A stretch of 64,000 nt of DNA, taken from NCBI GenBank assembly GCA_047495785.1, contig JBLDXI010000054.1:620001-684000 (forward strand). The letters are read 5' to 3'. This document shows, piece after piece, positions 21,359-59,016 of the stretch (position 1 is its first letter; each line of letters opens with the position of its first letter). The position numbers and the translations under genes are program-made. The stretch comes from Lepidodermella squamata (Eukaryota > Animalia > Gastrotricha). The notes beneath the pieces were generated by a model. That model did not search any database, was not told the DNA's origin, and saw only the letters and a program-made list of their open reading frames with translations.

Positions 21359-23277
21359 CTATATTGCGCAGTCACTTGCTCGTCGCCAATAGAACTTTCA
21401 CTTCGGGCAGTTTTTACTTTTATTACTGAAAAACGTGGCTTGCACTGCTTCAAAAAAGACAGTTTAAAACGGAATCCTTTGATGCCAGTTTCATTTTATT
21501 CATCAAAAATGAATCAATTGCAAAAACGAAAAATTGTCAAGTTAATTGTGGATGCTGTTTCACGAGACGCCATGCTCGAATAGCTGCTTTTACTGCGACC
21601 ACTGCGCCACTGCGACAGGCCCGAAGAAACTATGGAAATAAATAACAATTAATAATTGAAATCAATTAAACACGAAAATACCTTCCTGTCAATTTTTCAT
21701 CGATACCGTTACGAATTGTTGACCGACTGGTTAAGACTGGTTTGGCAGCAGAGTCGATTAGCGGGACAAACCTTCAACAATTGCGGGTAAATTAAAGAAA
21801 ATGGAATTAATTTCAAAATTACCTTGAAAATTCGATAAATATCTGACTTGTCCAAATTGCATGATCGACACACCTGGTAGCAAGGCGGCGGGGATTGATG
21901 AAGCTCAAAATGCGAAATTGAGGCCGGACGAAAAATTCTTACTAAATAGGTCATTGATGTTTTGGAATTAAAAACAAAAATAAGATGATTAGAATGAAGC
22001 AAAAAGCCACATTTTTGAAGCATGGCGTGATTACGCAACACCCTGAGGCTTGTGTGCACAACAATCGAGCGCCATAATAACAATGATTTTGCCCTATTTC
22101 AGCTTTTATTTAGAACGACAATTTTCAGTCATTACAAATTTGGCTTTTACGAAATATCTAAATTATCGAATTTTGCTGGCATTCTTATATTCTCGATAGT
22201 TCAGGCTGAAAACGATAAAAATTCGGTTATTTTCAGGATCCAGGTAAATAATTAGGAAAAATTAGGAAAAATCGGGAAAAATCGAGAAATTTTATGATAA
22301 ATAAAAACACTTTGATCCGGAAAGGTAGAAGGCAGTTTTTCGAGCCAGGGAATTTTCCGCGAAACAACTAGAGGTCGAGGCATCGAATTTCGTTCACTTT
22401 CGTTCACTACTTCTCACTTCGCAGTGAAAATAACGGAAAATCGTAAGTTTTTTCAACGGCGACGAAGAAATATGTTCACCTGGCAGTTAACTTCAGGTCT
22501 CGGGTGGCAAAACGCCGAATTTCCCAAGTTTCAGGAAAAAACTGTGCCAATTTCGCGAAGTGACTGGTTTCCAGGTTTAACTTCAAGTTTTTTCCAAAAA
22601 CTTCAGTAAGTTTCGAAAAAAGATGAAAAATGACAGTAAACGGCGTTTTCTGGCAGTTTCCTGCAATTCCCACTGGAACTTCGCAGTATTTCGCAAAAAA
22701 CGTGCACTTGCTGCTCAGGGTAGCAGTACTTCGCACTCTCGAATTCAGGTCTGGTCGACTTACAGGGGTTTCGTATGAGCACAGCATTAACTTATTTTTT
22801 TATTCCTAGCATCAGTGAGCAGCCCGGCCTACTACCACCCGAAATTCTGAAATTCGAAATTCAATTTTGTAAAACCTTCATTTTCTCAGTTTTTTTGAAT
22901 AGGATATTTAAGAGCGCTAGTGCAATTAATAAATAAAATAAAATCACATCAAAAGCTCTGCTATCAAAGGAACACAAGGGCTGATCTCAATTACGATAAG
23001 AAATTTTACCACCTGGTAATAATATATACTGCATAGTATGTTGACACAGACGCACACCTCCATGTTAGAAAAAACGTGATAATATTCATAGTATTCACAA
23101 GTGTGCTCATGTAAATCTCCTGCACGCGTTTGTTATGCCAGATCCTATGTGGCATGAATACACACAGCCCAGTGGAAAGAGCTATATGCTTTATGCTAAA
23201 CTGCTTGCGATATCATGAGTAATACGCCGGTTCTGGACCGTTGAAATTGCATTCACAACTTCCCATCCTGAGTGATT

Positions 23278-24657
23278 ATGGCGTTTCGCGATGAAGTTTG
23301 CAGCGAAATCGAGCCAGCGATATTCAAGTCAAAAGCGAAAACGGCTTCAACTCAAAAGCAAGATACTCCAGCGCCGGTCAAGATACGTAAAGTTGACCTC
23401 ATCCTAATCGGTGATCTTGGCAGTGGCAAGCACGACCTCGCCTCCATGCTGGCCGAAAAGCATGACGAAGCAAAGCAAGCGATTATTCAACGATATCAGC
23501 AACTCAAATCTGGATCTCAACCGTCAAAGAAGCCAAGCAAAACCAGCTTCGACGTCACGATCAAAGTAGTTTCCGGTAAGCGGGATGAAAGCGGCGATAC
23601 CCCGGTTAAGCGATTCCTCCATCGTGCCAGCTCTACCTCTAGTGAAAAGAAATCGAAGGATGTTGAAATTCTGCTGCTATGCATTGCCGTGAATATGCAA
23701 GATTCGATACGCCTCGTCAACTCTTATTGGTTACCTCAATTATGCGAACCTGGCTTGGTCGATGTACCGCTGATTCTTGTTGGGACGAAATCTCATCTCA
23801 GGGAGTCACAGATCTACCAAGACCAAGAACTGGCGTCTAATACGAATAATCGATTAGTCGAGACTGGGAAGGCCCAATCGTTAGCTGAATGGATCGGGGC
23901 ATTGAGCTATCAAGAATTTTCAGCTCAAACAGGGGCTGGATTCGAGGAATTACTTCAGAAAATCGCGATTGCAGCTAACCAAAGGCGGAAGGACCAGAAG
24001 AAGCAAAGATCACGAAGAATTTCGTCTTTGGTCGAAACTGAGAAATTCTCCCATACAACCTTGAAGTTCATCTTAGTCGGAGACGGAGAGTGTGGGAAAA
24101 ATTGCTTGGCGCAAGTATTCAGCCACGGAATTTTTCCAAACGGAGACTACGAACCAACCCCATTCGAACAGTACGAAGCTGTGGTTCAACTGGTTGCTGT
24201 TAGTAACGCACAACGAATCTTGGATGTTCCGGTTCAACTGTGGAAAACGTCCGGTAGGAATCAACGGCACGGCACTATCGACTACCACGATCGATTAAGG
24301 GGGATTTCCTACGCCGAATCTGACGCGGTATTACTCTGCTTCGCCGTAGATCAACTAACGACTGAAAAACGAATAATCGATTACTGGCTGCCTGAAGTCA
24401 ACTTCCGGTGCCCGAATGTGCCGATAATTCTAGTTGGACTTAAAACTGACTTGAGAACGGATCCTTTGACATTAGTCAGACTTAAGCCGTTAGATAAGGA
24501 ATTCGGGCAGAACTTGGCTCGAAAAATTGGTGCAGTGGCGTATGTTGAATGCTCGTCGAAAACAAGCCACGAGGACGTTCGAGAGGTATTTGAAGCTGCT
24601 GTGAAAGCCGTTTTCGAAACGGATCGATACCGGGAAAAACACTGTGCTTTAATGTAA
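23278..24657 (+). CDS. Tandem double Rho-family GTPase-like protein with C-terminal CAAX (intronless)
   Basis: Domain 1: LILIGDLGSGKH...VPLILVGTKSHLR...YQEFSAQT. Domain 2: KFILVGDGECGKN, YEPTPFEQY, LWKTSG, YAESDAVLLCFAVD, WLPEVNFRCPNVPIILVGLKTDLR, YVECSSKT. Ends CALM. Confidence 0.85.
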   Translation: MAFRDEVCSEIEPAIFKSKAKTASTQKQDTPAPVKIRKVDLILIGDLGSGKHDLASMLAEKHDEAKQAIIQRYQQLKSGSQPSKKPSKTSFDVTIKVVSGKRDESGDTPVKRFLHRASSTSSEKKSKDVEILLLCIAVNMQDSIRLVNSYWLPQLCEPGLVDVPLILVGTKSHLRESQIYQDQELASNTNNRLVETGKAQSLAEWIGALSYQEFSAQTGAGFEELLQKIAIAANQRRKDQKKQRSRRISSLVETEKFSHTTLKFILVGDGECGKNCLAQVFSHGIFPNGDYEPTPFEQYEAVVQLVAVSNAQRILDVPVQLWKTSGRNQRHGTIDYHDRLRGISYAESDAVLLCFAVDQLTTEKRIIDYWLPEVNFRCPNVPIILVGLKTDLRTDPLTLVRLKPLDKEFGQNLARKIGAVAYVECSSKTSHEDVREVFEAAVKAVFETDRYREKHCALM

Positions 24658-25492
24658 CACTCATCACCCACGTGAGATTTTTTATCATCGTGATTTTTTT
24701 GTGAATAAAATGATGATTGATGGCTGAGGCTTTGTCTATTTTTTCTGCCGATCGATTTTTCTATTCGGTGATGGTAAATAATTGCCAATCAAGGCGAGAG
24801 ATTAATTAATGGATGTGTTTTCGCACTAAATTTTTTCATTTAAATGCTGCGTGTGGGTATTACGCCAGCTGCACGCCAAAACCAAAGAAGCTAAAATTAT
24901 GAAAATTTGAACATTTCCTATACTCCCTACTTCCTCTTATCCTTACTTTGGGAGATTCCCACTATTTTTGTGCTGAAAAGCTAATCCCTGATTTTAGAGA
25001 ATTTTTGAATTTTAGAAACCTGATAGCGTCTGGATACATTTTTAAAAATATTTGAAAATTTTGCCGGGCAGTGAATTCAATACGGAATGCTTTGTCTAGG
25101 ATTAACTCGGTCATTTTTGCCCGTTCATTCCCCTTTAAAGCAGAACATGCTCAACGGTAAATAGGTATTTTCATGAAAAACAGCGCCGCAATACATTTCA
25201 ATAGCTCATGTTTGACAGCCGTTTACCTTGCGTTTCTCTCAAGAATGCGTAGGCCCGGAAATCGATTAAAAAATTCAGGAACCAGCAATTGCACTGCGCT
25301 GTGGCAAATACTGGAAATGCCGGGGAATAATTTTTATACACCCTATTTAGTTCTCGGTGTCCCCTGGGTGTCTACGTCAAATTTCAGAAAATCACGCGAT
25401 TTGTTGTCTCCCTGACCTGAGTATTTAAGTGGCATTTTCAACGTTGAAATGAACTGTTAAAAATTATTTTGTTGACAATTAGACTAAATGTG

Positions 25493-26647
25493 ATGCTTCT
25501 GGTTTTATGTCTTGCATTACTGCTATCCCCGGCAAGTAGCTTCAAGCTAGTTATTTCCGAGCTCCTAACGACTTGCAGCAATTTGTCGTCGAATTCCTAC
25601 ACACCACATTGCGTTGACGGGGATGTGGCCCTGCGAGATTGTAAACAGACAAAAGTTAAAGCTGGCCTGTTACCGCATCGCTTCTACCGAATCGACGATG
25701 TTGGAGAATCCATGGCCTTCTCCGGGGCTCTGAACTTCAACTGGTACTACCAATGCGATGATTTCCATGGCGCGGGCAATTGCGCGACTTACATCTTAGA
25801 CGAAGGCCAGTCGTTCTGGCGGCCACATATGCATCACAAAAACGCGGTGGATGACTTTGCGATGGTCAGCGGCTTCACATCTCGAATGTACGCGTTTTTC
25901 GACGAAAATCAAACCGACTACAACGTGGGGGTATACTGGCAGCGGGTTGGGGTATTCAACTCGTTTTGCCCAATGGACTTCACATATTTCCCTTTTGACA
26001 CTCAAAATTGTGAGGTCGCGTTTGTCATGCAAGAATCGGCTAAAGCAGCGGTTTTCGTGCCATCCCAGCAAACTAAGGTCGATTCCCTATTCATGGACGC
26101 TTATGGCCTGGGTTGGAATTTTCTCAACATGACAGCTAGGTATAACTATATCGATGTTTTCGGCAATCGAAGCGCGGCTATTTTTGAGTTTACGTTCAGG
26201 CGAAAACCCGAATTTTTCGTCTACAACTTGATAGTTCCGACTTTAGTTTTGTCTTCACTGGAGCTTTTCGCGTTTTTCATGTGCCCTGACATCCCAGATC
26301 GGCCAATGTTTGCGCTAACAATTTTGTTATCGCTGACGTTTTTACAGGGCACGATTCTAAGTCGAATCCCAGCCAAGCCGCAGCGTATTTTTCTGAGCAA
26401 TTACACCGATATGTGTTCGCTGTTCTCTTGCCTGTGTACGATCTATTCGCTTGGCGCGTGTTGCTATGCAATCACGTACGAGAATTGGGCGAAGTCGAAA
26501 TACGCCGTCAAAAGTGCCGTGTTTAGCCGTCTGGCGCTAACTAACTGCCGCGTGATTGATCTGGCGGTATTTTGCATCGCCCTCCTCGCGTTTTTCGGGA
26601 TCAATATCTACGCTTTGATTACTGCGAAAATTGCTGGCTACCTGTGA
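25493..26647 (+). CDS. Divergent Cys-loop (nAChR/5-HT3-like) ligand-gated ion channel subunit, intronless
   Basis: Signal peptide, FWRP, Cys loop CPMDFTYFPFDTQNC, pre-M1 FRRKP, four TM segments, very short M3-M4 loop, no vicinal Cys pair. Confidence 0.85.
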   Translation: MLLVLCLALLLSPASSFKLVISELLTTCSNLSSNSYTPHCVDGDVALRDCKQTKVKAGLLPHRFYRIDDVGESMAFSGALNFNWYYQCDDFHGAGNCATYILDEGQSFWRPHMHHKNAVDDFAMVSGFTSRMYAFFDENQTDYNVGVYWQRVGVFNSFCPMDFTYFPFDTQNCEVAFVMQESAKAAVFVPSQQTKVDSLFMDAYGLGWNFLNMTARYNYIDVFGNRSAAIFEFTFRRKPEFFVYNLIVPTLVLSSLELFAFFMCPDIPDRPMFALTILLSLTFLQGTILSRIPAKPQRIFLSNYTDMCSLFSCLCTIYSLGACCYAITYENWAKSKYAVKSAVFSRLALTNCRVIDLAVFCIALLAFFGINIYALITAKIAGYL

Positions 26648-40913: not shown

Positions 40914-41582
40914 TCAAAGTATCTCACATCGCTTTCGAGCTGGTTTCAATTTGCGTTTCAAAGCCATGGAAACGGCAACCTCAAACACCTTATCGAGGTT
41001 CTGCCGCGTTTTAGCCGAGCACTCGATGAAATAGGGTGCATTGATGCGTTGAGCTGCAGCTTTTGCTAGTTCAATATCGATAAGAAACTTTGACGGAGTG
41101 GCTGATTCCTCTCCCGGCAGCCTGAGATCAACTTTTGTACCAACCAGGATTATGGGCACTCCTGAACAGTAATGCCGCAGCTGAGAAAAAAGTCTGAGAA
41201 AAAACTCCTTGAAGCAAGGTTCATTACCTACCTCGTGGATCCATTTGTCTTCGACATTTTGCAGCGAATCGAGATTATCGACACTGAAGCAAAGCAGTAT
41301 GGCATCGATTTGAGAATTCGCATATTGAATGAACCGGAACTGCTCATAAGTCTCCTGGCCAGCTGTATCCTCGCAAATCAGCGCGACAGGATGCTTCGGA
41401 TACTGTGGCACTGTGATGTCCTTAGACGTCGTTTCATACACCGTTGGCTCGTAGTTGTCGTAGAACTGTTCTCGCATGTAAGCGAGAAGTAGAGACGTCT
41501 TGCCTACAAAGCCATCGCCTGCTGCCAACAGTTTGATGGGAATAGCCTCTCGGGTGGACGTTTCCCGTTTAAGTAGCCTCAT
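40914..41582 (-). CDS. Divergent Rho-family small GTPase
   Basis: GDGFVGKT, YEPTVYE, DTAGQE, VGTKVDLR, ECSAKT, polybasic tail and CEIL CAAX. In-frame 51-nt GT-AG intron at 41181-41231. Confidence 0.9.
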   Translation of the reverse strand: MRLLKRETSTREAIPIKLLAAGDGFVGKTSLLLAYMREQFYDNYEPTVYETTSKDITVPQYPKHPVALICEDTAGQETYEQFRFIQYANSQIDAILLCFSVDNLDSLQNVEDKWIHEVGNEPCFKEFFLRLFSQLRHYCSGVPIILVGTKVDLRLPGEESATPSKFLIDIELAKAAAQRINAPYFIECSAKTRQNLDKVFEVAVSMALKRKLKPARKRCEIL

Positions 41583-42566
41583 CAATCGTTTTTGAAGTGT
41601 TGACGTTTATGATGGCTGTTTCCGGGTCCTGTTCACTCTTATCTAGGAATGCACTGAATGAAACAGACGCTTGGGCTTGAATGCTCCTGTTTTATCGGGT
41701 CTTGAAGCGGATAAGATAACAAAATTACAACTTGGTAGTTCTTGTTCTTGGTTTTCACTTTGAACGACATGATAACAAGTTCCAGATTATTATTATTATT
41801 ATGAAATTAGTATTAGCGAAATGCATTTAGATTGATACGAATTGATTAAATTTCGATATTCAATTCACTAGGGTGATTGCGCGCGTGCTCTAGGAATAGG
41901 TCTAATCTTTCTGATGAGTGGGTAAAACTCAACCTCAAATTATCAAACCTTAAAAAAGGAGACGCGAAACTTCATGATGTCCTCGAGATCAGATATCTTG
42001 GCTAAAATATTCCTAAACATCAGCAGATTGGATTTGAACTAGTGTTCGACTATAAGGGGTCCAATCTTCTGAAGCTCAGCGAGATCTGAGAAAATAATAA
42101 GAAAGCTCCGCTCGTATTCTGGTTTCGGAATCATGAGTAATTTTGGGAAATGTAACTAATAAGTTGCCTATCCCTGGCAGCTCCAGGATCCATGATCGCA
42201 ACCTGACTAAAACGTTAAAATTTTCGAGATTTTAGATTTTTTGAATATGCCATGTTTGTCATTTTCTTACCAAAATGGCCAAGTCTAAAAACAGGGACAT
42301 CACAGGCGAGTCTTCATTTTTCCAAGGTATTTATTGAAAAACATATTCCAGATAACCAGAGTGCCCTGATTTCATATTTGCATACTAACACGACAAATTG
42401 ACAAAGTTTAATCACGATAATTTCAAAACCAGGATCGAAAGATAAACATGTTTCGCATCTCATCATGTCTAATCACATCGAAACTCAAAATCGATAACGT
42501 ACTCGAGTTAAACGTGTTTACATTCAATGTCGTGATCTGGTTTTCGATTTTTATTCGAAATGCCTT

Positions 42567-44948: not shown

Positions 44949-45350
44949 TTTTTAAATGCAATGAAGTTTTCAATACTGATCCCCGCGACTCTCTCGCTAG
45001 CTCATTAATGTTACAAGATGATTAAACCCCCCATCTTATCAAATTTCAGCGTACATTGCCTTGATATCTTGAAAAGCTCATTTTAATTTGTCTGAGTGAT
45101 TGTCTCTGGCTCGCAGTTATCCCAAATCATAAGGAAGATCAGGTTCATTTGGACGAGTCCCAAGGTCAATTTTACCGCCGATTTCTTTGATTTCGCGATT
45201 GAAGTTTTCTCATCAATTCAAGGAGTGAGAGATTGTCAAACATATTGTCTCTATGAACGAAAAAGATCTAGGGCAGAAAGTGAGAAAAAGCGGCGCATTG
45301 AAAACAACGTTCTTTATTACATAGTTCGTATCGTATCGAAGTGTCCTGGT

Positions 45351-48300
45351 TTAGGCAAGATAGTTGTAAATTGCTTCAAAACCACGTTGCATTGCATAGT
45401 CTATAGGCCTCAAGCCTCGCCCGTCCTCCATCTCCTTTGCTTTCGGGTACTTGCTAGCAAAAAGACTCACAACATCAATGTCATAACGATCTCGATTCAC
45501 ACAAATTGATAGAGGCGTTGAACCGTTGTTGTCCACCCTTTTAAGCGCACCAGACCATTTATCGAGTAGAAACACTATGATGTTGTAGTAATCTCCTGTT
45601 ACGACTTCAGCATCAACACCATGGTGAAGCGGGGTGCGGCCCCATCTGTCATAGGTTTTCACGCCATCTGGCCATTTCAGCGCGAGATACTTGACCATTT
45701 CAAACGAACCCATACGAGCAGCTCGAGATATTGGTAAGATTTGGGAATAGCCACGTTGTGGGCCGGATATTGGTGGTAACTGCTGCCGCTTCTCAGCTCG
45801 GCTTCTCATATCAAGGTCAGGGATCTTCGCAGCTTCTCGCCATTCCTTTCGTAGAGTTTCAGCGATTTCCAAGTTCCCAATGCACACTGCGTGGAGAAAT
45901 GGGGTAAAGCCGGATCTATCATACACTTGGACCAATTTCGGTTGCTTTTCCAAGAAGAGTCTGACCATGGGCATCGAACCCTGTCGGACTGCAGCGCAGA
46001 GCGGATTTTCGCCCCTTGAGCATGCTTCTACAATAGCATGCGGGATTTTGTCAATCAGGAATTCAACGACTTCAGATAGATTACGCTCGAATGCTAGAGT
46101 GATTGGTGTTCTTTGCCTTGAGTCACTAATATTGACTGCTTCGGGCCATTTCTCAGCCAGGAAAGATGTGATCTCCATTCTATGGTTATCTTCAGTCCAA
46201 CCTAAGATTGTTTGAATTGTTTCATCGTTTATGAGATTACTGGAGTAGTTTGAAATCGCAGTTTTCACGAAATTCATGAAATCGAAGTTATCAGCTAGAA
46301 TTTCGACCATTTTCGAGTCTTGCGAATCGTAAGAAGTTAGAGAGTCGAAGAAACCAGTCGCCCAAAACATTGTCTCTTCGTTCTGCGTTGACATGAATTG
46401 AGCTAGAGGCCCTATGATCTGGTTCAAAAGCCCGGAGTAACTCTGGCTCTGAGGAGCTCGTAAAGCTCTGGAAAGCTCATGAACAATTGAATCGTACTCA
46501 TTGGGGTGGCTCTCCATGTATTCAGTGATATCCGATTTACCAGCAGTTGCGAAAAAATCGGCATAAATTGAACCAGACATTTTCGCTCCAGCTTTTGAGG
46601 CCTCTATGATAGCTTGTCTTGCCTTGTCTTGGACTTCAACTCCATAAGATAATCTGCTATTTTCGCTTTGATTTGAGGTATTCCTTAGCTGGACTATATC
46701 TGGGAGTCTGTCCATAACGAACCGAAACAAATCGACTCGATCAGCCTCTAGAGAAGCTGCGAGAGCTGTTCGTCCAATCAGATCTTGATATCTGACCGCC
46801 GCGACCCATTTTGAATAGATGAATTCAACGACTTCTTTCGATGCTTGATGTCGTGAAGCTGCGACTGCAAGCTGGGTCCTTCTCAAATTGGCATCGACAT
46901 ACTTCACAGCATCAGGCCACCATTTGTAGATGATTTCAGCCACGGCAAGGCTAGAGCTATGTGCCAGGGCTGATTCTCCGAATTTATTGATGAATTTAGC
47001 TGAATCGGGATATTTGTCCAATATGTAAGAAACAATTTCGAGGTGACCATAACTAGCCGCTGTGAATAGGGGCGTGAAATGTCGTATGTTGTCGTCGATT
47101 TTCAAAGCTTCGGGACATTTTTCTAGGATCAATTTCACGATATCGATTGGTACATCGTATCGAATAGCCATCGAAAGAACGACGCAACCCCTCGCGTCTC
47201 TAGCTAGGGTAGATTTAGGCCAATGGTTGACTAAGATCTTAACAACATCGTAGCTTTGAAATCTAATAGCTTCCATTAGAGGGGTAGATCTAAAATACCA
47301 GAAAAAAATGATGAAAATCGTAGTTAACCTTGTGTTTTGGCTTACCTGTTAATTTTTGATGGTAGATTGATCAGAGTTTGGTCTGCCTGAGCTAGGAATT
47401 TCGAAATATCTTGAAGATTGAGCCTTGCAGCCCAATGTAGTGCTGACATGCCGAATTTATCCGTAATCCTGGACCCTTCCGGCCATTTGCTTTGAAGAAG
47501 TTCTATAACTTCTTTATGGCCTTTCCTCATCGCAGCCAGAGATAGCAAAGTCCTATTATCTTCGTCCACCAATTTAACTGAATCTGGGCACATTTGGTAC
47601 AGAGTTTCGACTAAACCATCATTGCCGAGTTCAGCTGCGAATTTCATAGCAATAAACTCGGTTCTCAGGTCGTCCGACCAGTTGTCTTTGGATAGATCTG
47701 CCAAGGGCTTTGATGATTCACGATTGACGAGCAATTTCCGGAAGAAACCTGGATCGAACAAGGCAATTAGTCTTTCGGCTACTGTTTCAAGTCTCAAATT
47801 GAGTAAATTCGAAACCATAGTTGGGAGTACCAAACAATCCTCGACTGGTCTCTCCATTTCAGTAAGATCGAAGAAGTCCTTCACAAGTCTGAATCGGACA
47901 TCGACCAAAGGAATCTCCGAGCTTAAGTTGAAATGAATTTTAGCTTCTTCAAGAAGCATGTTATGAAACAGTTGATCAGTTGAAAGGGCCCGAGCAGTTG
48001 GGAATTCCAGATTAGGTATTTGCCGATCTAATTCTACGGCTTCTCCAGCTTCAAGTGCTCTGACGATGCGATCCCTGTGATTAGCATTCGACTCGAAAAT
48101 AGCCTGTGAATTTGCTTTTATAGTTGATTCCCAATCAATCACTTCGACCTGCGTGATAAGGCCGAGTTTGATGAAGTACTCGATCTTTTCAAACTTCTCT
48201 TTTCCGACCAGCCTGACGATACAATCGGCTTTGATCGGTTCCGAATGGCCAAGCATTAAGAAAACGAAAAGCAACCGTTTCTCATCGAAATCAAGGATTC

Positions 48301-50727
48301 TGTCAAAAATGTATCGAATAAGCTGTTTGGCATCTAGTTTTGTCTTGATCATGGCTGAATCACCAATAATTTCGAAAAATCGCCTCGTGTAGTTGGTGGC
48401 ATGAGTGAAAAGAGCGGCTAAAAGTCTAGCAACTTGATGCTTTCCATCGCAGAGACGGGCCAAAGCCGAAAAATGATCGCTACTGAGCTTTTCTTTCATC
48501 TTGTAAGTTGTCTTGAAGATTTCCACTATTGAAGCATCAGACAGCCGTTTTATCGCGATTCTATGACCTTGCACATCCAGTTCTTCCCTTGATATCACGC
48601 AGAACGGAGAAGCCTTAAATTGTTCTCGGTAAGTTTCAAATATTGACATTAGTTCGCAGTGATCAAAAACGAAAAGAATCCTATTGTTTCCAATTGATTC
48701 AAGCAAATCGACTACATCTTTGATGGTTCGAAGTTTCAAAGAAGGGCTAAATAGGTTTAACATAGCGCAAAGCTCTTTGCTGAGGTGATCAGCGTCGAGG
48801 GCGTAGGTCGATTTGGCATCGATCCAAATCACGAATTGTATGCGGCAACTTTCGTATAGGAACTTATGGTAATTCCGGCTAGAGAGAACTTGAGATAGGA
48901 CAGTGGATTTTCCGACTCCAGGCTCCCCAAATATGTTCAAAATACCTAAAGGGATTAATGTATTTCACACTCTTTTATTAGATAAGAGTGACTACCTTTT
49001 GAAGCATCTTTACAGGTCGACTTCAGCTTATCAAGGATAAGTAATTCGTCTTCCTCCCGTTTCCAATAGTTGGATAGTGAAGGGACATTCAAAGTCCTGA
49101 TATAACATTTTGTAATATAATTAAAGTTCAATGAGGCATCTTACTGTATCGATGAGTGAGGTTCGACTCCCCTTGCCGATAGTTTGGCGATAATTTGGCT
49201 AGATTGAACAGGCTCTTCATCGTCTGAATCAGGCAAAGGAACGTTTCTCAGGCCCCTGCGCACCACCTCGAGCTTTCTAGGCAGGCCGCCACACATTTTC
49301 GCCAGGGATAAGGCCTTCTTAGCATCTAGGACACCTTTTCCTTCCTCTTGATAGATTAACGTTAGTACGGCGGTCATTTCAGTTATACTGAAGGGCGGTA
49401 GCTCGAACGAGTTGCTTATCAAGTGTTTCAGTTCCTCGCCAATTTGAACCATCGATTTGTAGACGTCGGTTCGAAGTGACACAATGCAAGGCCAGCCATT
49501 GCTGCAGCAAAGCTGTGTGATTGCGTTGAGCAGATGCAAGTGGAAGACATCGTCGAAAACCAGGATGCAATCAGGATTTGCTACCTTACTCCTCGTCTCG
49601 TTGATGGACTTAATATTAGGGTATTTGATGATGATTGAATCGAGGACTAACTTCTCGAGATTCGAAACGCTATCGTTATTGAAATCTTCTCGAAACTCGT
49701 AGCAGTTGATGTAAAATGCGGCTTGGATATGGAGTTCATTCTTCAGATGCTGAACAATATCTGCCTCGTTGAAGAATGTGAGAAGGAATTGAGTTTTGCC
49801 GACCCCGTTTTGCCCATGGAATACCAGGCACCCAGTCTCTGGGCTTCGATATAGTTTCTCCGTCTTCGAAAGGAAGTTTTGGACGATTTCTGGGTCCCGT
49901 CGGTATATATCAGTTTCCCACGCCGGGGCGTTGAACAGCTTGAAAGCGCTGCAATGGGACATAGTTAATTTTTTATTGGTTTTACTATCAACTAAAAAGC
50001 CTAACAGAATCTATACCCTTATCTTAGTCTTTACGAGACCCTAACCCTCACGAATCTCAACTTTGGAGCTGAACCTCTTTCAATTGGCTAAAGTTGGAAA
50101 CTGGACATTTAGGGAGTTCCAGGGATCAGGAATTCAAAACAAAGGAAGGGTAAACATCCCACAGTGGGCTCATTGGTTTCTTCTGCTGGGTCAAGGAAAA
50201 CACCTCAATTCCAGAATCCTATTTCGCACACTGGGGAGTTTCTTAATTCTAAAGCCTAAACCCTAAACATATATGGAAGTGAAAATTAGGTTAGAAAAGC
50301 ATTACTTGTCAACAGTCGTTGGAATTCGCTCAATCAATGTTTCGATAACGTTCTCAGTTGCATCCTGATCGAACCATGAGATCGTCTCCAAATTGCCCAT
50401 CATCAACCAGATCTCACCCCTTCTGTCATTTGCATGTTCCTCGTCTAACAGAACGCAAAGAATCGGCAACTGTCTTCTGTGGGCATGAGCAAGTTCTTCG
50501 AAGCAAGTCTTGCTGTCTCGATATAGGTCGCAAATAAAGACGAGGAACACATCGCACTGGTTGATTCCATGAAAATCCGGTCCACCATGTTCCTTTCTGC
50601 TGAGCCAAATTTGGAAGCTTCGTGACAAAGTATCAGCCAGGTCTCGGATTTCTTCGGATCTGTAGTCTTGGGCATAACTGAAGAAAACCGAGGGCACCTG
50701 CCCATCATGTTCAGCTAAAAACGGCAT
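45351..50727 (-). CDS. TIR - STAND/NB-ARC-like - STAND/NB-ARC-like - ankyrin-repeat protein (~1633 aa, 5 exons)
   Basis: Exons 50727-50306, 49984-49145, 49096-48996, 48945-47346, 47289-45351 join in frame (4902 nt). TIR: VFFSY...CFEELAHA. NTPase 1: GQNGVGKT, ILVFDDV, CGGLP. NTPase 2: GEPGVGKS, LFVFDHCE. Many ankyrin repeats follow. Confidence 0.75.
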
Positions 50728-50970
50728 TTTACACCTTGTGTCGATGTGAAAGTAGCATCATGAAATAGCATTTTTTTCTAGAATGCATTGATCCGCCTCA
50801 ATGGATTGATACACCCATTAAGCGCACGGATAGAATTATGTCCTCAAAATGCATTTTTTTCATTAAAATGAATAGCGTAGTCCATAGAAAACGACTGCAT
50901 ATGCGCCTTCAATGGGTCAATACAAAAAACTCCCAGGTCACAAGTAATAGGCGTGAAGCGGTGCGTTTTA

Positions 50971-53900
50971 TTACGTTTGCTTCGAAATCGATTTATACCG
51001 CTTCAGGTACTCAAGTATTTGCGTATTACCAGCATCTTCTGCAAGTTTGCATGCACGTTTCAGATCTGGAATTTTCACACCTAGTTGCAGCAGTGAATCA
51101 ATGGCCTTGACGTTGTCGCATTTGTTGCTTATCGCCCGTTCGATAGGCGTGTCGCCTAGTTTCCCGCGCAATTCGACGTTCGCACCTATGTCGATGAGCA
51201 GTTCGATGACTTCGGACCAACTTGCGTCTCGGTGGCAGGAATCGACGGCGTAGTGCAGCGGCGTGTCGCCCTTAGCATCTCCAACGTGAATGTTCGCGTT
51301 GTATTCCAGCAGCAAATTGATACCGGCGAGCACCTTCCTTGTTACCACACCTTGAATGAGAAGAGTAATATCAAGAGTTGAGCTAAAAAATAACAAATAG
51401 GGGGAACGATGGCGATGGCCCTTCGTCGTTCCATTGCATTTCAATATGTCCGAGCTCGATTTGAGCTATCCTGATAGCTATCCTCACAAGCTTTTTGACG
51501 AACATAGTTCCACTCATTCCGACCTCATATAAATGTCCCAACCCTAACCCTAGCCCTAGCCCTAACCCTAACTCTAGCATTTGCCATACTGCCAAAATAG
51601 GAGAAAGGGAAGATCGAGGTTCGATTTGAAGGCTTAGACCGACCTTCACTCATCAATAGATGCATAGCGGTTCTCTCCCGATCCTTCGTCACATCGCTCC
51701 TCGTATTCGGACTAACTTTGACCTCTTCCAGCAAATACCTCGCTGTTTCGATTTGATGAGCAAGCAGAGTCTTCTGCAGCAACGTTCTGCCCAAGTTATC
51801 GCGAATATCCATGAAAAAAGACGGCCGCCATTCGATGAAAAACCGAACGATATCAATGTGCCCTGTCATTGCTGCCACATGAATAGCTCTATCACCATTG
51901 TCATCAGCAACACTCGCTAGGGCAGGTGCTTGTTTGACCAGGAATTTCACTATTTCCAACTTGTTGTCATAAGCATTCTCCGCGAGTTTCACGATCTTCT
52001 CACCTTCAATTGCGATATTGCCAGGCCTTGGTTCTCGTATTGCGATTTCGTGGAAGGATCTGAGAAGCTTTTCTTGTTTCTCCTCGGGAAGAGCAGACTG
52101 ATCTAACAAATCCTCCTCCCCAGACCACAGGCAAGCGTGATGAAGAGTTGAGCGATTCATGAACCCACGTTCTAAGATATCACAGCCGAAAATTATCAGT
52201 TTTTGAGCAGTAGTCAAATGGCCAGCTAAAAGGGCTAGGTGAAGTGCTGTATTTCCATTGGAATCTTTCATTCTAGCATCAGCTCCAGATTGGACGAGAG
52301 CCTCGATTACTGGGTCTATTCCGAGTAAAGCGGCTAAGTGAAGTGGGGTTCGGCTGAAGTCACGTTCAGAGCTTTTCGCATTGACATCAGCGCCACTTTT
52401 CACAAACTGTGTGATCGCCTCGGTCCGGTTTGTCATCGTAGCTGTATGAAGAGGGGTTCGGCCCAAAAAACCAGGCACATCAGCAATACTCACACTTTTG
52501 ACCCATGAAGTCAGAAACCGAATCACATCCGCATTATTCGAGAATTTGATCACTTCTTGCAAGAATGAACTGCAGATTTCCGCTTCGATCTCATCGTCGC
52601 TCATCCCATCTTTCTTCGCCATCGAAGATTTTTCATGCTGTAACAAGAGTTTGAACACCTTTTTCGAGTTGAACTTCGCAGCGAGTAGGATTGCAGTGAA
52701 TGAGTCATCATCGCGACCTTGGGACTGGATTTTAGAATTTCCACCGAATTCGAGGAGAAGTTTCGCCATGTCATAATCGTTTCGAACAGCACAATCGTGT
52801 AGAGCTGTTCGACCAGTTCTTGAATTAACCTCATTTACCGGACAATTGTTCTTCAACAGAAATCGCACCATCTTTTCAGAGCTTTTGCTGACGTAGTATT
52901 GAAAAACGTTGAATCCTTTCGCATTTTCATAGCTGAAAACCGATTTTGAGCCGTATTTAATGATCGCTTTTGCGCAGTCGAAGTTTTTCTTGATTAGGCT
53001 GATATGAAGAGGAGTAGCGCCATCGTGCTCATTCTCAGGGCATCGAACGTTGAGCTTTGCCTTACCTCGAGTTATCAGAAGTTTCGCCATTTCTGGATCT
53101 CCATGCTCCAGAGCGACCAACTGAAAAAAAAAATTTCAGGGATTGAAAAATGAGCAAATCGAGGTCTTACCATTATCGGAGTGTGATTTTTGTTGTTCCC
53201 AGTCTCCACCGATGCTGGGCTGTACTTGATAATCGTTTTCGCAACCTCGTAGAAACCTAATCGAACTGCTGAATGCAGGGGAGTGTTTCCCTCAACATTA
53301 TCTTTCACACACGCATTCGCTTTGTAATCTAGCAATAGCTTCACCATACTCAAATTATCAGCCGAAACAGCGAGATGTAACACAGTCTCTCCATCGGGCT
53401 CGAACTTCACATTTGCATCAGCCTTCATTTTCAACAGCGTTTTAGCCATAGCTTGTTTATCTAGTTGAACAGCGAAGTGGAGAGCTGTAAGCCCTCCAGG
53501 GTGATTTTTCACTTTTTTTGACCTTGCATTGATGTCAGCATCCAAATCATTGACCAGCACCTTGGCGACTTCAATCGAATCGAGGACTACCGTTTCTTGA
53601 AGTGGTGTCCTGCCGTTGTGTCGACTCGGCCTATCGACATCATCGTCACATTTCAAGACCAATATTTTCAACGGATTAATCTGGTTGATTTTAATGGATA
53701 GGACGAGTGGTGTATTTCCATCGGTATCTTCCAGAGTCAGGAGTTTGCCATCCTCCCAATTGGCGAGATAGAAAAGAGAGAGCAAATTGTTCTCATGTAC
53801 GGCTTGATGGATAGGCGAGACGTTTGACCGGTCGAAAAGATTTGCTCCAATAGTAGGATCAGCGTCCAATTCATCGAGAAGTAGCTCCATTACTGGAATA

Positions 53901-55062: not shown

Positions 55063-56683
55063 TCAATTTGTACTTTTTACTATGATTGCAACATCGACGA
55101 TGAAAATGACTGAGAAAAGTGTAATATAGAACATTATGTCATAAACTCGCAATTTTGTTAAACTTAACGGCTTCCATCGCAATTCAACCCGCGATTTCAT
55201 GAACGCCCAGTTTGAGCCTTCACAGCAAAACAGGGCGTGGATTGTTACAAGAGCTCCAGCAGCTAGTTGCATTTCCAGGAATAAATCAATTAACGGAATT
55301 TGGGCCGATTTTGGTATAGATTCAGTTAGAACTGATTGCAGAACGGCGAATGATAGCAGGACTGTTATGCAAAACCCTGGTCTCTCCGGCCTTTCAGGTG
55401 GCATGAAAACCGACGTTGAAATCGTGACTTGCAAGATGATGCATGGGACGTAGATGCTAGTGACATAGGCCATGTATTTCCTAGCGAAAACGAAAGTAAC
55501 CACCACACGGCTGTATAGCATATGATCGTTCAGGTATGTATGATTGATGTTGGCTATGCTGCTCGATTCGAGCCTCCAAAGTTCACCTTCGGAGGTAAAA
55601 TTTCTATTCACTGACAAGGCCCCAGCCTCTTCAGCTTCTAGCCGGACTGACAGGGAATTTTCATATGATTCAAGTACAATGCCGCAGGTTTGAACATCGA
55701 ATGGGAAGTTGGTGTGGTCCAAATTGCAGAAAAATGTCAGCGGAGTCATTATGTACCAAGCAACACTAGTGTTGCTGTAGAAGTAAACCTTCGACAGCTC
55801 GGCGAGCCTTAAAAACAACATTCAATATATAAGCATACCTACATTTTAAGGATCGATCCTCACGATTCGAAAGGTAACAGATCTGTGGCTGAATTCATTA
55901 CGGGTATCATTGGAAGCCAAACATCGGAAGCTTTTATCTTGATGTGCTCGACATTAACAGTTTTATCCGCTCGCCAGTCAACGCATGGATGGCTCCAATA
56001 GAAATTGAACACTGCCAAAATTGATATTCTGGTGGAAAAATGTTAAATATGAGCAGGGCCCAGTGTGCAAAGTCGGGGTATACCACCCGGCTCCAGAGGT
56101 CCAGGCAAGAAAACCCTGAAAAAACCCTCTGCAGAGCCCCTTTGGTCAGGGAAATTCTCGGGGCAGAATCCTACTTCATTCACTGGTAGGACCGGATCAC
56201 TGGCCGGATCATTAGGCAGATAAGAGAGGTAATGCTTGGGTCCGATAAAAAATTCGAAACCTCAGAAAAAAGACCACAGGGAACCCTCACCCTATCGGTA
56301 ATTTGCCTTAAGGAACTTAATCATGTTCAACTTTCATTGTCATGATCTGGCACTGTGATTGGCAGTCATTGCTGCCCATGCATGAATTACATTTTTACGC
56401 CGAAAACTTACGTTTGATCTTTATCTGAAAGAGATCGCAGGCGCACAGCCACAAATTCAAGTTTCACTTTGATGCCCTGAGTAAATTTAGCGACTGGTCT
56501 AGCTTTAGACAGCAGCGAGCACTTTTCGATCATCGCTCGTGCTACCAGTTCTTCTTCAGGCACAAATTGCGGAACAGTCGTCGAGGAGACATTTAACTGC
56601 ATCGCTGCGGATACCAGCAGGAATGAATTTGGTATCGCAATGAACAGGCTCAAAGAATTGGCGAAGCCTCTCGAAAACAACAT
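55063..56683 (-). CDS. Divergent Cys-loop ligand-gated ion channel subunit (3 exons)
   Basis: Exons 56683-56412, 56028-55864, 55807-55063. ARPV, DVWLP, Cys loop CNLDHTNFPFDVQTC, four TM segments. Confidence 0.85.
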
Positions 56684-57655: not shown

Positions 57656-59016
57656 TCAGTTTATACTCCCAACAATGACTGTAACGTCGACAATGATAAT
57701 GAATGAGAACACAGTGATGTAGAACATTAAGTCGAAAATTCGCAATTTTGACAGATTTAATTGCTTTGATCCGAATCGCGATTTCATGCATTTCCAGCGT
57801 GAGATTTCACAGCACACCAGGGAGTGAATTGTTACAAGTGCCCCAGCGGCGAGTTGCATCACGAGAAATACTTCAATCAACGGAATCTGGGCCGTTTTCG
57901 GGATAGATTCAGTTAGTACTGATTGCAGAACGGCAAATGATAGCAAGACTGTTATGCAAAATCCTGGTCTTTCAACCCTTTCAGGCGGCATGAAAACAGA
58001 AGATGAAATCGTGACTTGCAAGATGATGCATGGGACGTAGATGCTAGTGACGTAGGCCATGTATTTCCTAGCGAAAACGAAAGTAACCACCACACGGCTG
58101 TATTCCGCTTCATCGTCAGGGTATGTGTAATTGTAGGATGAGATATTGCTAGATTCAAGCCTCCACAGTTCAGCGTCAGAGGTGAAATCTGCATTTATTA
58201 TCAAGGATCCACTCTCTGCAGTTTCTAGCCGGACTGACATTGTGTTCGCAAATGATTCAAAGATGAGACCACAGGTTTGAACATCGAATGGGAACTTGGA
58301 GTGGTCCAAATTGCAGAAAAATGTAAACGGGGTCAGTACGTACCAAGCTACTAAGGTGTCGTTATAGAAGTAAACCCTCGTCAGCTCAGCAAGTCTTCGA
58401 CATCAAATTAGATTTACTTGAAAGCATTAGGAGGATTATTTTGAGCCTTACGCTTCAAAGGGTAATAGATCTGTAGCTGAATTGATCACTGGTATCGTTG
58501 GTAACCAAACATCTGAAGCCTTTATCTTGATGTGCGCAACATCAACAGTTTTATCCGACCGCCAGTCAACACATGGATGGCTCCAGTAGATGCTCAACGA
58601 AGCAAGGAGTGATATACTAAAGGAAAATAGTATTTCAAAACTGCTTAGACACCGCTACGTAACTCAGGACGTTGGTCTCTACTACACACCACTCTATCAT
58701 TTTGGTTTTAATTAAGCCTTCTGGTCGAATTTGCAACTTACGTTTGATCTCTATCTGACAGTGATCGAAAGCGCACGGCCATGAAATAGAGTTGCACGTT
58801 GATGCCTTGGGAATATTTTGCGACTGGCCTAGCTTTCGACATCAGCGAGCACTTTTCGATCATCGCACGCGCTACCAACTCTTCTTCTGGCACAAATTGC
58901 GGAACAGTTGTCGGGGAGACGTCAGACTGCATCGCTGCGGATCTCGGGAAGAATGCATTTGATAACAGGATGAACAGGCTGAAAGAAGAGAAGAACCTTC
59001 TCGAAAGCAACATCAT
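57656..59016 (-). CDS. Divergent Cys-loop ligand-gated ion channel subunit, tandem paralogue (3 exons)
   Basis: Exons 59016-58742, 58616-58452, 58394-57656. Cys loop CNLDHSKFPFDVQTC; highly similar to the neighbouring gene. Confidence 0.85.

Follow-up and report, generated by a model that had tools for sequence, protein, structure and literature searches.

A 64,000-nucleotide (nt) stretch of the genome of the gastrotrich Lepidodermella squamata (hereafter the window; GenBank assembly GCA_047495785.1, contig JBLDXI010000054.1, positions 620,001 to 684,000) was analysed, in which the minus strand between positions 50727 and 45351 carries four long open reading frames (ORFs) of 141, 273, 532 and 641 amino acids (aa). 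A preliminary description of this locus had proposed that these ORFs, together with a 101-nt exon, are spliced into a single frame of about 1633 aa, and we were able to reproduce that model exactly. The five exons join to 4902 nt, comprising 1633 codons and a stop codon with no internal stop, and the four introns of 321, 48, 50 and 56 nt all begin with GT and end with AG (Table 1). On balance, we favour the view that this is one gene encoding a cytosolic NLR-like switch protein of 1633 aa, in which a TIR head is followed by a first NTPase module (module 1), an acidic linker, a second NTPase module (module 2) and an array of ankyrin repeats.

The stretch is present in two public sequencing runs, X1 and X2. 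In X1, an RNA-like run from 2015, the junction of intron 4 (47346/47289) was the sole junction seen, in one contig with 29 nt on its shorter side and skipped ends that read CT..AC on the plus strand, while the junctions of introns 1 to 3 are those predicted by the sequence model. No junctions for introns 2 and 3 were listed in the X1 contigs and exon 3 was not seen there; the short, patchy contigs of this run fall in exon 1, the 3' portion of exon 2, exon 4 and exon 5. Between 45500 and 47800, most X1 contigs feature joints between opposite strands about 100 nt apart. These fold-back chimeras are probably an amplification or library artefact, and X1 is therefore of limited worth for transcript structure. 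One X1 contig has a loose end at 48805 that would encode M-F-N-L-F-S-P-S-L-T, compared with M-L-N-L-F-S-P-S-L-K in the gene (aa 516-525), and this near-identity hints at a transcribed paralogue or allele in the X1 sample.

Run X2 is DNA and contains two haplotypes at approximately equal depth, with some contigs identical to the window. Measured on the longest contigs only, where paralogue admixture is possible, the divergence of the second haplotype from the window rises along the gene, from 0.1% in the TIR and upstream region through 1% in module 1 and 6.6% in the region that follows module 2 to 9.7% in a portion of the ankyrin tail. Receptor genes whose sensors vary typically show such a gradient. 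Among 39 listed differences between the haplotypes, six are intronic and 33 are exonic, and 23 of the exonic changes are synonymous, compared with a share of 23-29% expected from random change (p < 2e-6). Exon 3 carries three of these differences (one synonymous and two conservative), and the single indel within the exons, at 47527, is 3 nt long and in frame. Given this synonymous excess and the in-frame indel, purifying selection acts on the frame from exon 2 through exon 5. The gene is real and selectively maintained. A pseudogene, or an artefact of assembly or annotation, could be argued from the three junctions out of four that are predicted and from the low, patchy RNA-like cover, but the open 4.9-kb frame, the strength of the synonymous excess, the preserved phase of the indel and the spliced contig bring this explanation close to refutation, and we regard it as scarcely credible. 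Within intron 1, X2 contigs break at 50196-50234 with unrelated loose ends and dips in depth, which suggests an insertion/deletion difference between the haplotypes at this point. The same intron carries the telomere-like bits GGGTTTAGGC and GGGTTAGGG.

Table 1. Features of the TIR-NTPase-NTPase-ankyrin locus and of its surroundings in the window
Feature	Position	Strand	Basis
Exon 1, complete TIR domain (aa 14-126 = 50350-50688)	50306-50727	-	ATG at 50727; Pfam TIR_2
Glu78 codon in C75-F-E-E78-L79, candidate catalytic residue	50494-50496	-	Codon from sequence; L6 TIR alignment
Putative intron 1, 321 nt (GTAATG...GATAG), multiple of 3	49985-50305	-	Spliced-frame model
Exon 2, NTPase module 1 (nucleotide-binding and helical domain)	49145-49984	-	Pfam NB-ARC, motifs, atlas neighbours
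Module 1 Walker A, GQNGVGKT (aa 198-205)	49792-49815	-	
Module 1 Walker B, ILVFDDV (aa 281-287)	49546-49566	-	
Module 1 sensor-1 Arg strand, CIVSLR	49471-49488	-	
Module 1 GxP (GLPL), CGGLP (aa 372-376)	49279-49293	-	
Acidic linker (P-D-S-D-D-E-E-P)	from 49233	-	
Exon 3, 101 nt, 34 aa preceding the P-loop strand of module 2	48996-49096	-	GT..AG on both sides, frame kept
Exon 4, NTPase module 2, helical/winged-helix-like region and first ankyrin repeats	47346-48945	-	Motifs, atlas neighbours, Ank_2
Module 2 Walker A, GEPGVGKS (aa 461-468)	48905-48928	-	
Module 2 Walker B, LFVFDHCE (aa 545-552)	48653-48676	-	
Module 2 S-R strand, FCVISRE	48584-48604	-	
Module 2 degenerate GxP, LCDGKH (C-D-G-K-H at the GxP place)	48437-48454	-	
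LFHNMLL (aa 780-786), possible MHD equivalent	47951-47971	-	By eye only
Start of the ankyrin repeats in exon 4	about 47668	-	
Intron 4, 56 nt	47290-47345	-	X1 contig joins 47289 to 47346
Exon 5, ankyrin array to stop TAA (45351-45353)	45351-47289	-	Ank_2
Non-ankyrin helical insert of about 150 aa splitting the array (aa ~1196-1345)	46218-46667	-	
AATAAA poly(A) signal, 33 nt past the stop	45313-45318	-	Read from sequence
Separate upstream gene with canonical ankyrin repeats only; ORFs of 271, 531 and 157 aa	50971-53890	-	Ank_2 up to 6e-55
Class C GPCR-like gene, single uninterrupted ORF of 793 aa	42567-44948	-	ANF_receptor E 3e-15, weak 7tm_3
Exons of three Cys-loop ligand-gated ion-channel genes	25469-26647; 55063-55821; 57656-58309	+; -; -	Neur_chan_LBD, Neur_chan_memb
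Two Ras/Roc-family GTPase ORFs	23272-24657; 40914-41585	+; -	

The TIR exon matched the Pfam family TIR_2 (PF13676) with an E-value of 7.7e-10 and 39.8 bits (cutoff 28), covering profile positions 1-116 of 122, and gave weak, sub-threshold matches to the Thoeris ThsB-type models of PADLOC and NCBIfam. Its best match among solved structures was the TIR domain of flax L6, which is weak (alignment E 0.066), and in this alignment D-S-K-T-C-F-E-E-L-A pairs with D-S-K-W-C-L-M-E-L-A of L6 and Glu78 falls on the L6 glutamate with high posterior. The TIR therefore does keep the glutamate of a C-x-x-E-L motif, as had been described previously, since C75-F-E-E78-L79 is aligned to C-L-M-E-L of L6. We take the aligned position to be that of the catalytic glutamate in plant TIRs and SARM1, and on this alignment Glu78 could support an NAD+-cleaving (NADase) output. 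Alternatively, the domain could be a homotypic adaptor of the TLR/MyD88 type that does not cleave NAD+, in which the glutamate would have been retained for its structural role. The evidence for an enzyme does come down to this glutamate and a general TIR_2 match, but the models and structures that the domain resembles (TIR_2 and, weakly, Thoeris ThsB-type proteins and plant L6) represent enzyme-type TIRs, and the glutamate occupies the aligned position, so an adaptor is a possible reading that we place on the unlikely side.

Module 1 (aa ~183-395) narrowly exceeded the Pfam threshold for NB-ARC, with a marginal match (24.0 bits, cutoff 23.5; E 2.8e-5) of aa 35-174 of its ORF to profile positions 10-147 of 248, and its NACHT score was below the cutoff. 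The motifs follow one another in the expected order of Walker A, Walker B (hhhhDD), sensor arginine and GxP, and the catalytic motifs are intact. No winged helix with an MHD motif was found after this module: only about 85 aa separate CGGLP from the next Walker A motif (aa 461), and since approximately 30 of these form the acidic linker and 34 lead into module 2, such a domain would not fit. As the winged helix is lacking, module 1 consists of a nucleotide-binding and a helical domain and is not a full switch. Its nearest neighbours by protein-language-model features in the atlas are NB-ARC, NACHT and nSTAND clusters (0.93-0.95), and an exhaustive HMMER search of 1.84 billion representative proteins returned no relatives of module 1 at E ≤ 0.001.

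Module 2 (aa ~426-880) retains one aspartate in its Walker B motif, where the second acid is replaced by histidine and a glutamate follows at +3 (F-D-H-C-E), and its GxP motif is lost. Both NTPases had been reported to feature Walker A and B motifs, with GxP in the first only, and all of these motifs could be located, with CDGKH standing in the GxP place of module 2. Its scores were below cutoff for AAA_16 (22.6, cutoff 32.6), AAA_22 (20.4, cutoff 27), NB-ARC (15.2, cutoff 23.5) and NACHT (12.8, cutoff 26.7) in Pfam, and PADLOC and NCBIfam yielded no STAND-family match, with generic AAA models sub-threshold only. Of the two STAND NTPases that the preliminary description had recognised, the first is thus borne out marginally as NB-ARC, whereas the second falls below every Pfam cutoff. 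A word-indexed search with aa 1-425 of the exon 4 ORF, against candidates of 293-931 aa, found no relatives of module 2 at E ≤ 0.01, and 223 pattern matches in metagenome contigs included none that was confirmed. Nevertheless, module 2 is probably STAND-type, based on motifs colinear with those of module 1 and on its language-model neighbours, which are again NB-ARC, NACHT and nSTAND clusters (0.93-0.95). The neighbours of the region that follows (aa 185-425 of the exon 4 ORF) include WHD_MalT clusters. In terms of fold, module 2 would represent a very divergent STAND-type unit with nucleotide-binding, helical and winged-helix parts.

The two modules can be aligned colinearly from Walker A through Walker B and the S/T-R strand to a CxG motif, with a BLASTP E-value of 29. 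As this value is not significant, we make no claim of duplication, and the earlier notion of a duplicated switch was overstated, both for this reason and because module 1 offers no space for a winged helix. A joint profile built from the two sequences was compared with solved structures, where the NB-ARC chain 9h2l_A matched over approximately 190 residues with all four motifs in register (E 0.067), CED-4 matched with E 0.66 and the best match was Cdc6 (E 0.0035), which is not an NB-ARC protein. These matches are suggestive, but not decisive, in placing the modules in the AAA+/STAND neighbourhood.

Several of these results weigh against module 2 as a STAND switch, namely its uniformly sub-cutoff Pfam scores and the first place of Cdc6 among the structural matches. 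In addition, single-sequence AlphaFold2 models were unusable (mean pLDDT 39.3 for module 1 and 41.2 for module 2) and so provided no fold evidence for either module, and the searches returned sequence relatives of neither. The low scores and the Cdc6 match could be accommodated by one polypeptide with a single working STAND switch, the other module being a generic or decayed P-loop domain, so that no two-engine mechanism exists. Module 2 would then serve as an ATPase scaffold of the ORC/Cdc6-like or AAA_16 type and would not be related to NB-ARC. AAA_16 and AAA_22 do outscore NB-ARC for this module, albeit all below cutoff, and the Cdc6 match, the lost GxP and the histidine in Walker B would suit a scaffold. 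However, the motifs retain their order as far as the S-R strand and the C-x-G position, the language-model neighbours are mostly NB-ARC, NACHT and nSTAND, joined by WHD_MalT for the following region, and the Walker B aspartate is followed at +3 by the acidic residue E552, as occurs in NACHT-type Walker B extensions. We therefore consider a single-switch protein with a scaffold-like module 2 distinctly unlikely.

The ankyrin tail was identified by Ank_2 matches to six stretches of exon 5 (E 1.3e-37) and to aa 434-520 of the exon 4 ORF (E 9e-11). Approximately 17 repeats of about 35 aa each could be counted, with a K-W-P-[DE]-A-like turn that appears as KWPEG, HWPKS, KCPEA, KYPDS, KWWPDA, KWVAA, RLPDI, KWPEA, KIPHA, KQPKL, KEWREA, KWPDG, KWSGA, KYPKA and other variants, so the recurrent KWP[DE]A motif noted in the first reading of the sequence occurs about 17 times. 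A helical insert splits the array, and this insert had no family match in the profile scan. Across the whole protein, the domains that had been anticipated were recovered to differing degrees: TIR_2 and Ank_2 are clear and NB-ARC is just above cutoff in module 1, whereas NB-ARC in module 2 and NACHT in both modules remain below. The C-terminus features ankyrin repeats only, with no leucine-rich repeats (LRRs) in the Pfam scan, and the protein accordingly has neither the NACHT and LRR combination of animal NLRs nor the LRR and C-JID combination of plant TIR-NLRs (TNLs).

The ORFs that encode the TIR and module 1 lie on the same strand, 340 nt apart, and the sequence of the gap makes it likely that the TIR exon is fused to the NTPase-ankyrin gene. 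A GTAA donor supplies the TAA that stops the TIR ORF, which is also how exons 2 and 4 end, and no AATAAA is present for 325 nt past this stop. By comparison, the flanking gene ends do carry AATAAA, which overlaps the stop codon in the upstream gene (50967-50972) and lies 33 nt past the stop in the gene studied here. Other observations count against a single gene. At 321 nt, intron 1 has six times the length of the other introns. The low-depth run X1, which is taken to be RNA only as a guess, leaves 49402-50356 uncovered, and since this region includes the 50306/49984 junction, the TIR exon could be part of a transcript of its own. Moreover, seven different in-frame GT..AG pairs exist at intron 1, one alternative being 50314/50010, and such pairs arise easily by chance because the TIR and module 1 ORFs share a genomic frame.

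These points would be explained by two genes, a 141-aa TIR-only gene (50727-50302, with its own TAA) and an NTPase-NTPase-ankyrin gene that starts from an ATG at 49962. Besides the uncovered gap and the ease with which in-frame GT..AG pairs arise in it, this arrangement fits with the TIR ORF having its own stop and module 1 having its own ATG after an A-rich stretch, and the 340-nt gap resembles the 244 nt between the stop of the upstream gene and the TIR ATG. Against this, a TIR-only gene would have no poly(A) signal within 325 nt of its stop, unlike both flanking gene ends, and its stop would coincide with a GTAA donor like those of two other large internal exon ends. We thus find two separate genes rather unlikely, and retain the fused gene as the basis for what follows. 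A hidden exon within intron 1 was considered and rejected, as this interval contains several stops in all three frames.

The window, which has a GC content of 43%, provides an animal genomic context that includes Cys-loop channel genes, a class C G-protein-coupled receptor (GPCR), a homeobox array and Ras-family GTPases. A tblastn search of its 64 kb identified no paralogues of the TIR, module 1 or module 2, the only similarity being that of the ankyrin repeats to the upstream gene. That upstream gene contains a dinucleotide-type simple repeat, around 51450-51560, that separates two of its ORFs. The class C GPCR-like ORF appears to be intronless in a genome otherwise rich in short introns, and the N-terminal 260 aa or so of the GTPase ORF on the plus strand (23272-24657) form an extension that matches no family.

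A mechanism for the fused protein, a putative immune receptor, can be modelled on plant TIR-NLRs and Apaf-1. The ankyrin array would keep module 2 closed with nucleotide bound, and a ligand on the array would release module 2 and allow nucleotide exchange. The protein would then oligomerise via its NTPase tier or tiers, and the clustered TIR heads would either form NAD+-cleaving sites with Glu78 or recruit a partner. Module 1 would most likely act as a second ATP-binding layer or as a regulator that precedes the true switch, module 2. A more elaborate proposal is a two-tier animal STAND receptor, in which module 1 represents a second nucleotide-driven ring or engine before a degenerate, regulatory module 2 and the whole drives an NAD+-cleaving TIR output, and which belongs to a bilaterian, arose independently of plant TNLs and has no detectable relatives outside its lineage. 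Modules 1 and 2 would then be likened to the two stacked rings of type II AAA+ machines. Taken as a whole, we view this combination as highly doubtful.

If the TIR is fused and active, a bilaterian would have independently built a plant-style TIR/STAND/repeat receptor, and this would bear on the question of how frequently evolution has linked NLR-type switches to TIR signalling by NAD+ cleavage. Module 1, without a winged helix, also lends itself naturally to testing the contribution of an additional nucleotide-binding tier to a STAND switch, such a tier being so far known only from a few plant NLRs. The locus itself contributes an intact copy that purifying selection maintains, and one of its junctions has been seen spliced.

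A search of the literature identified no paper on a TIR combined with two NTPase modules and ankyrin repeats in an animal, and the text of the L. squamata genome paper (PMC11660948) contains neither 'TIR' nor 'ankyrin'. The preliminary description had called the protein an unusual animal receptor, and its animal genomic context agrees with this, but the layout is less unheard-of than that wording implied. A TIR-NB-ARC protein has been reported among the expanded Apaf-1/CED-4 homologues of amphioxus (PMC2246300), NACHT/NB-ARC proteins with ankyrin repeats are found in coral (PMC4083563) and functional tandem NB-ARC NLRs are present in wheat (bioRxiv 10.1101/2024.08.30.610185 and 10.1101/2024.08.30.610287). 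NLRs that combine NACHT or NB-ARC with ankyrin repeats are also common in fungi (PMC4986451).

Plant TNLs such as RPP1 and ROQ1, as well as plant TIR-NB-ARC-TPR proteins (TNPs), share with this protein an N-terminal TIR with the C-x-x-E-L glutamate and an NB-ARC-type NTPase (Walker A, hhhhDD, S/T-R strand and GLPL) that is followed by a C-terminal repeat sensor. In those proteins the sensor consists of LRRs with C-JID or of TPRs, whereas here it consists of ankyrin repeats, the NTPase modules are two in number and the host is an animal; sequence similarity stops at the level of a Pfam domain match. SARM1 is a cytosolic animal protein whose TIR_2-type domain cleaves NAD+ via a glutamate at the same motif position. 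However, SARM1 carries its TIR at the C-terminal end of an ARM-SAM-TIR architecture and is regulated by an octameric SAM ring and not by an NTPase.

The amphioxus protein, which can be compared by its description only, is alike in joining an animal TIR to NB-ARC, but is reported as one protein with a single NB-ARC and no ankyrin tail or tandem module described. Fungal and coral proteins likewise place a STAND NTPase before ankyrin repeats as the presumed sensor and belong to lineage-specific, fast-evolving expansions, but they mostly feature other N-terminal domains (HET, HeLo, PNP_UDP or death-fold) and the papers on them describe no tandem NTPase; searches of protein collections detected no sequence relation between their modules and those studied here. 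Wheat WTN1 and Sr62-NLR are CC-NB-NB-LRR helpers that form calcium channels, in contrast to the TIR head, the ankyrin tail and the first module without a winged helix that are seen here, yet they are comparable to this protein in their layout, as each is a functional NLR with two successive NB-ARC modules.

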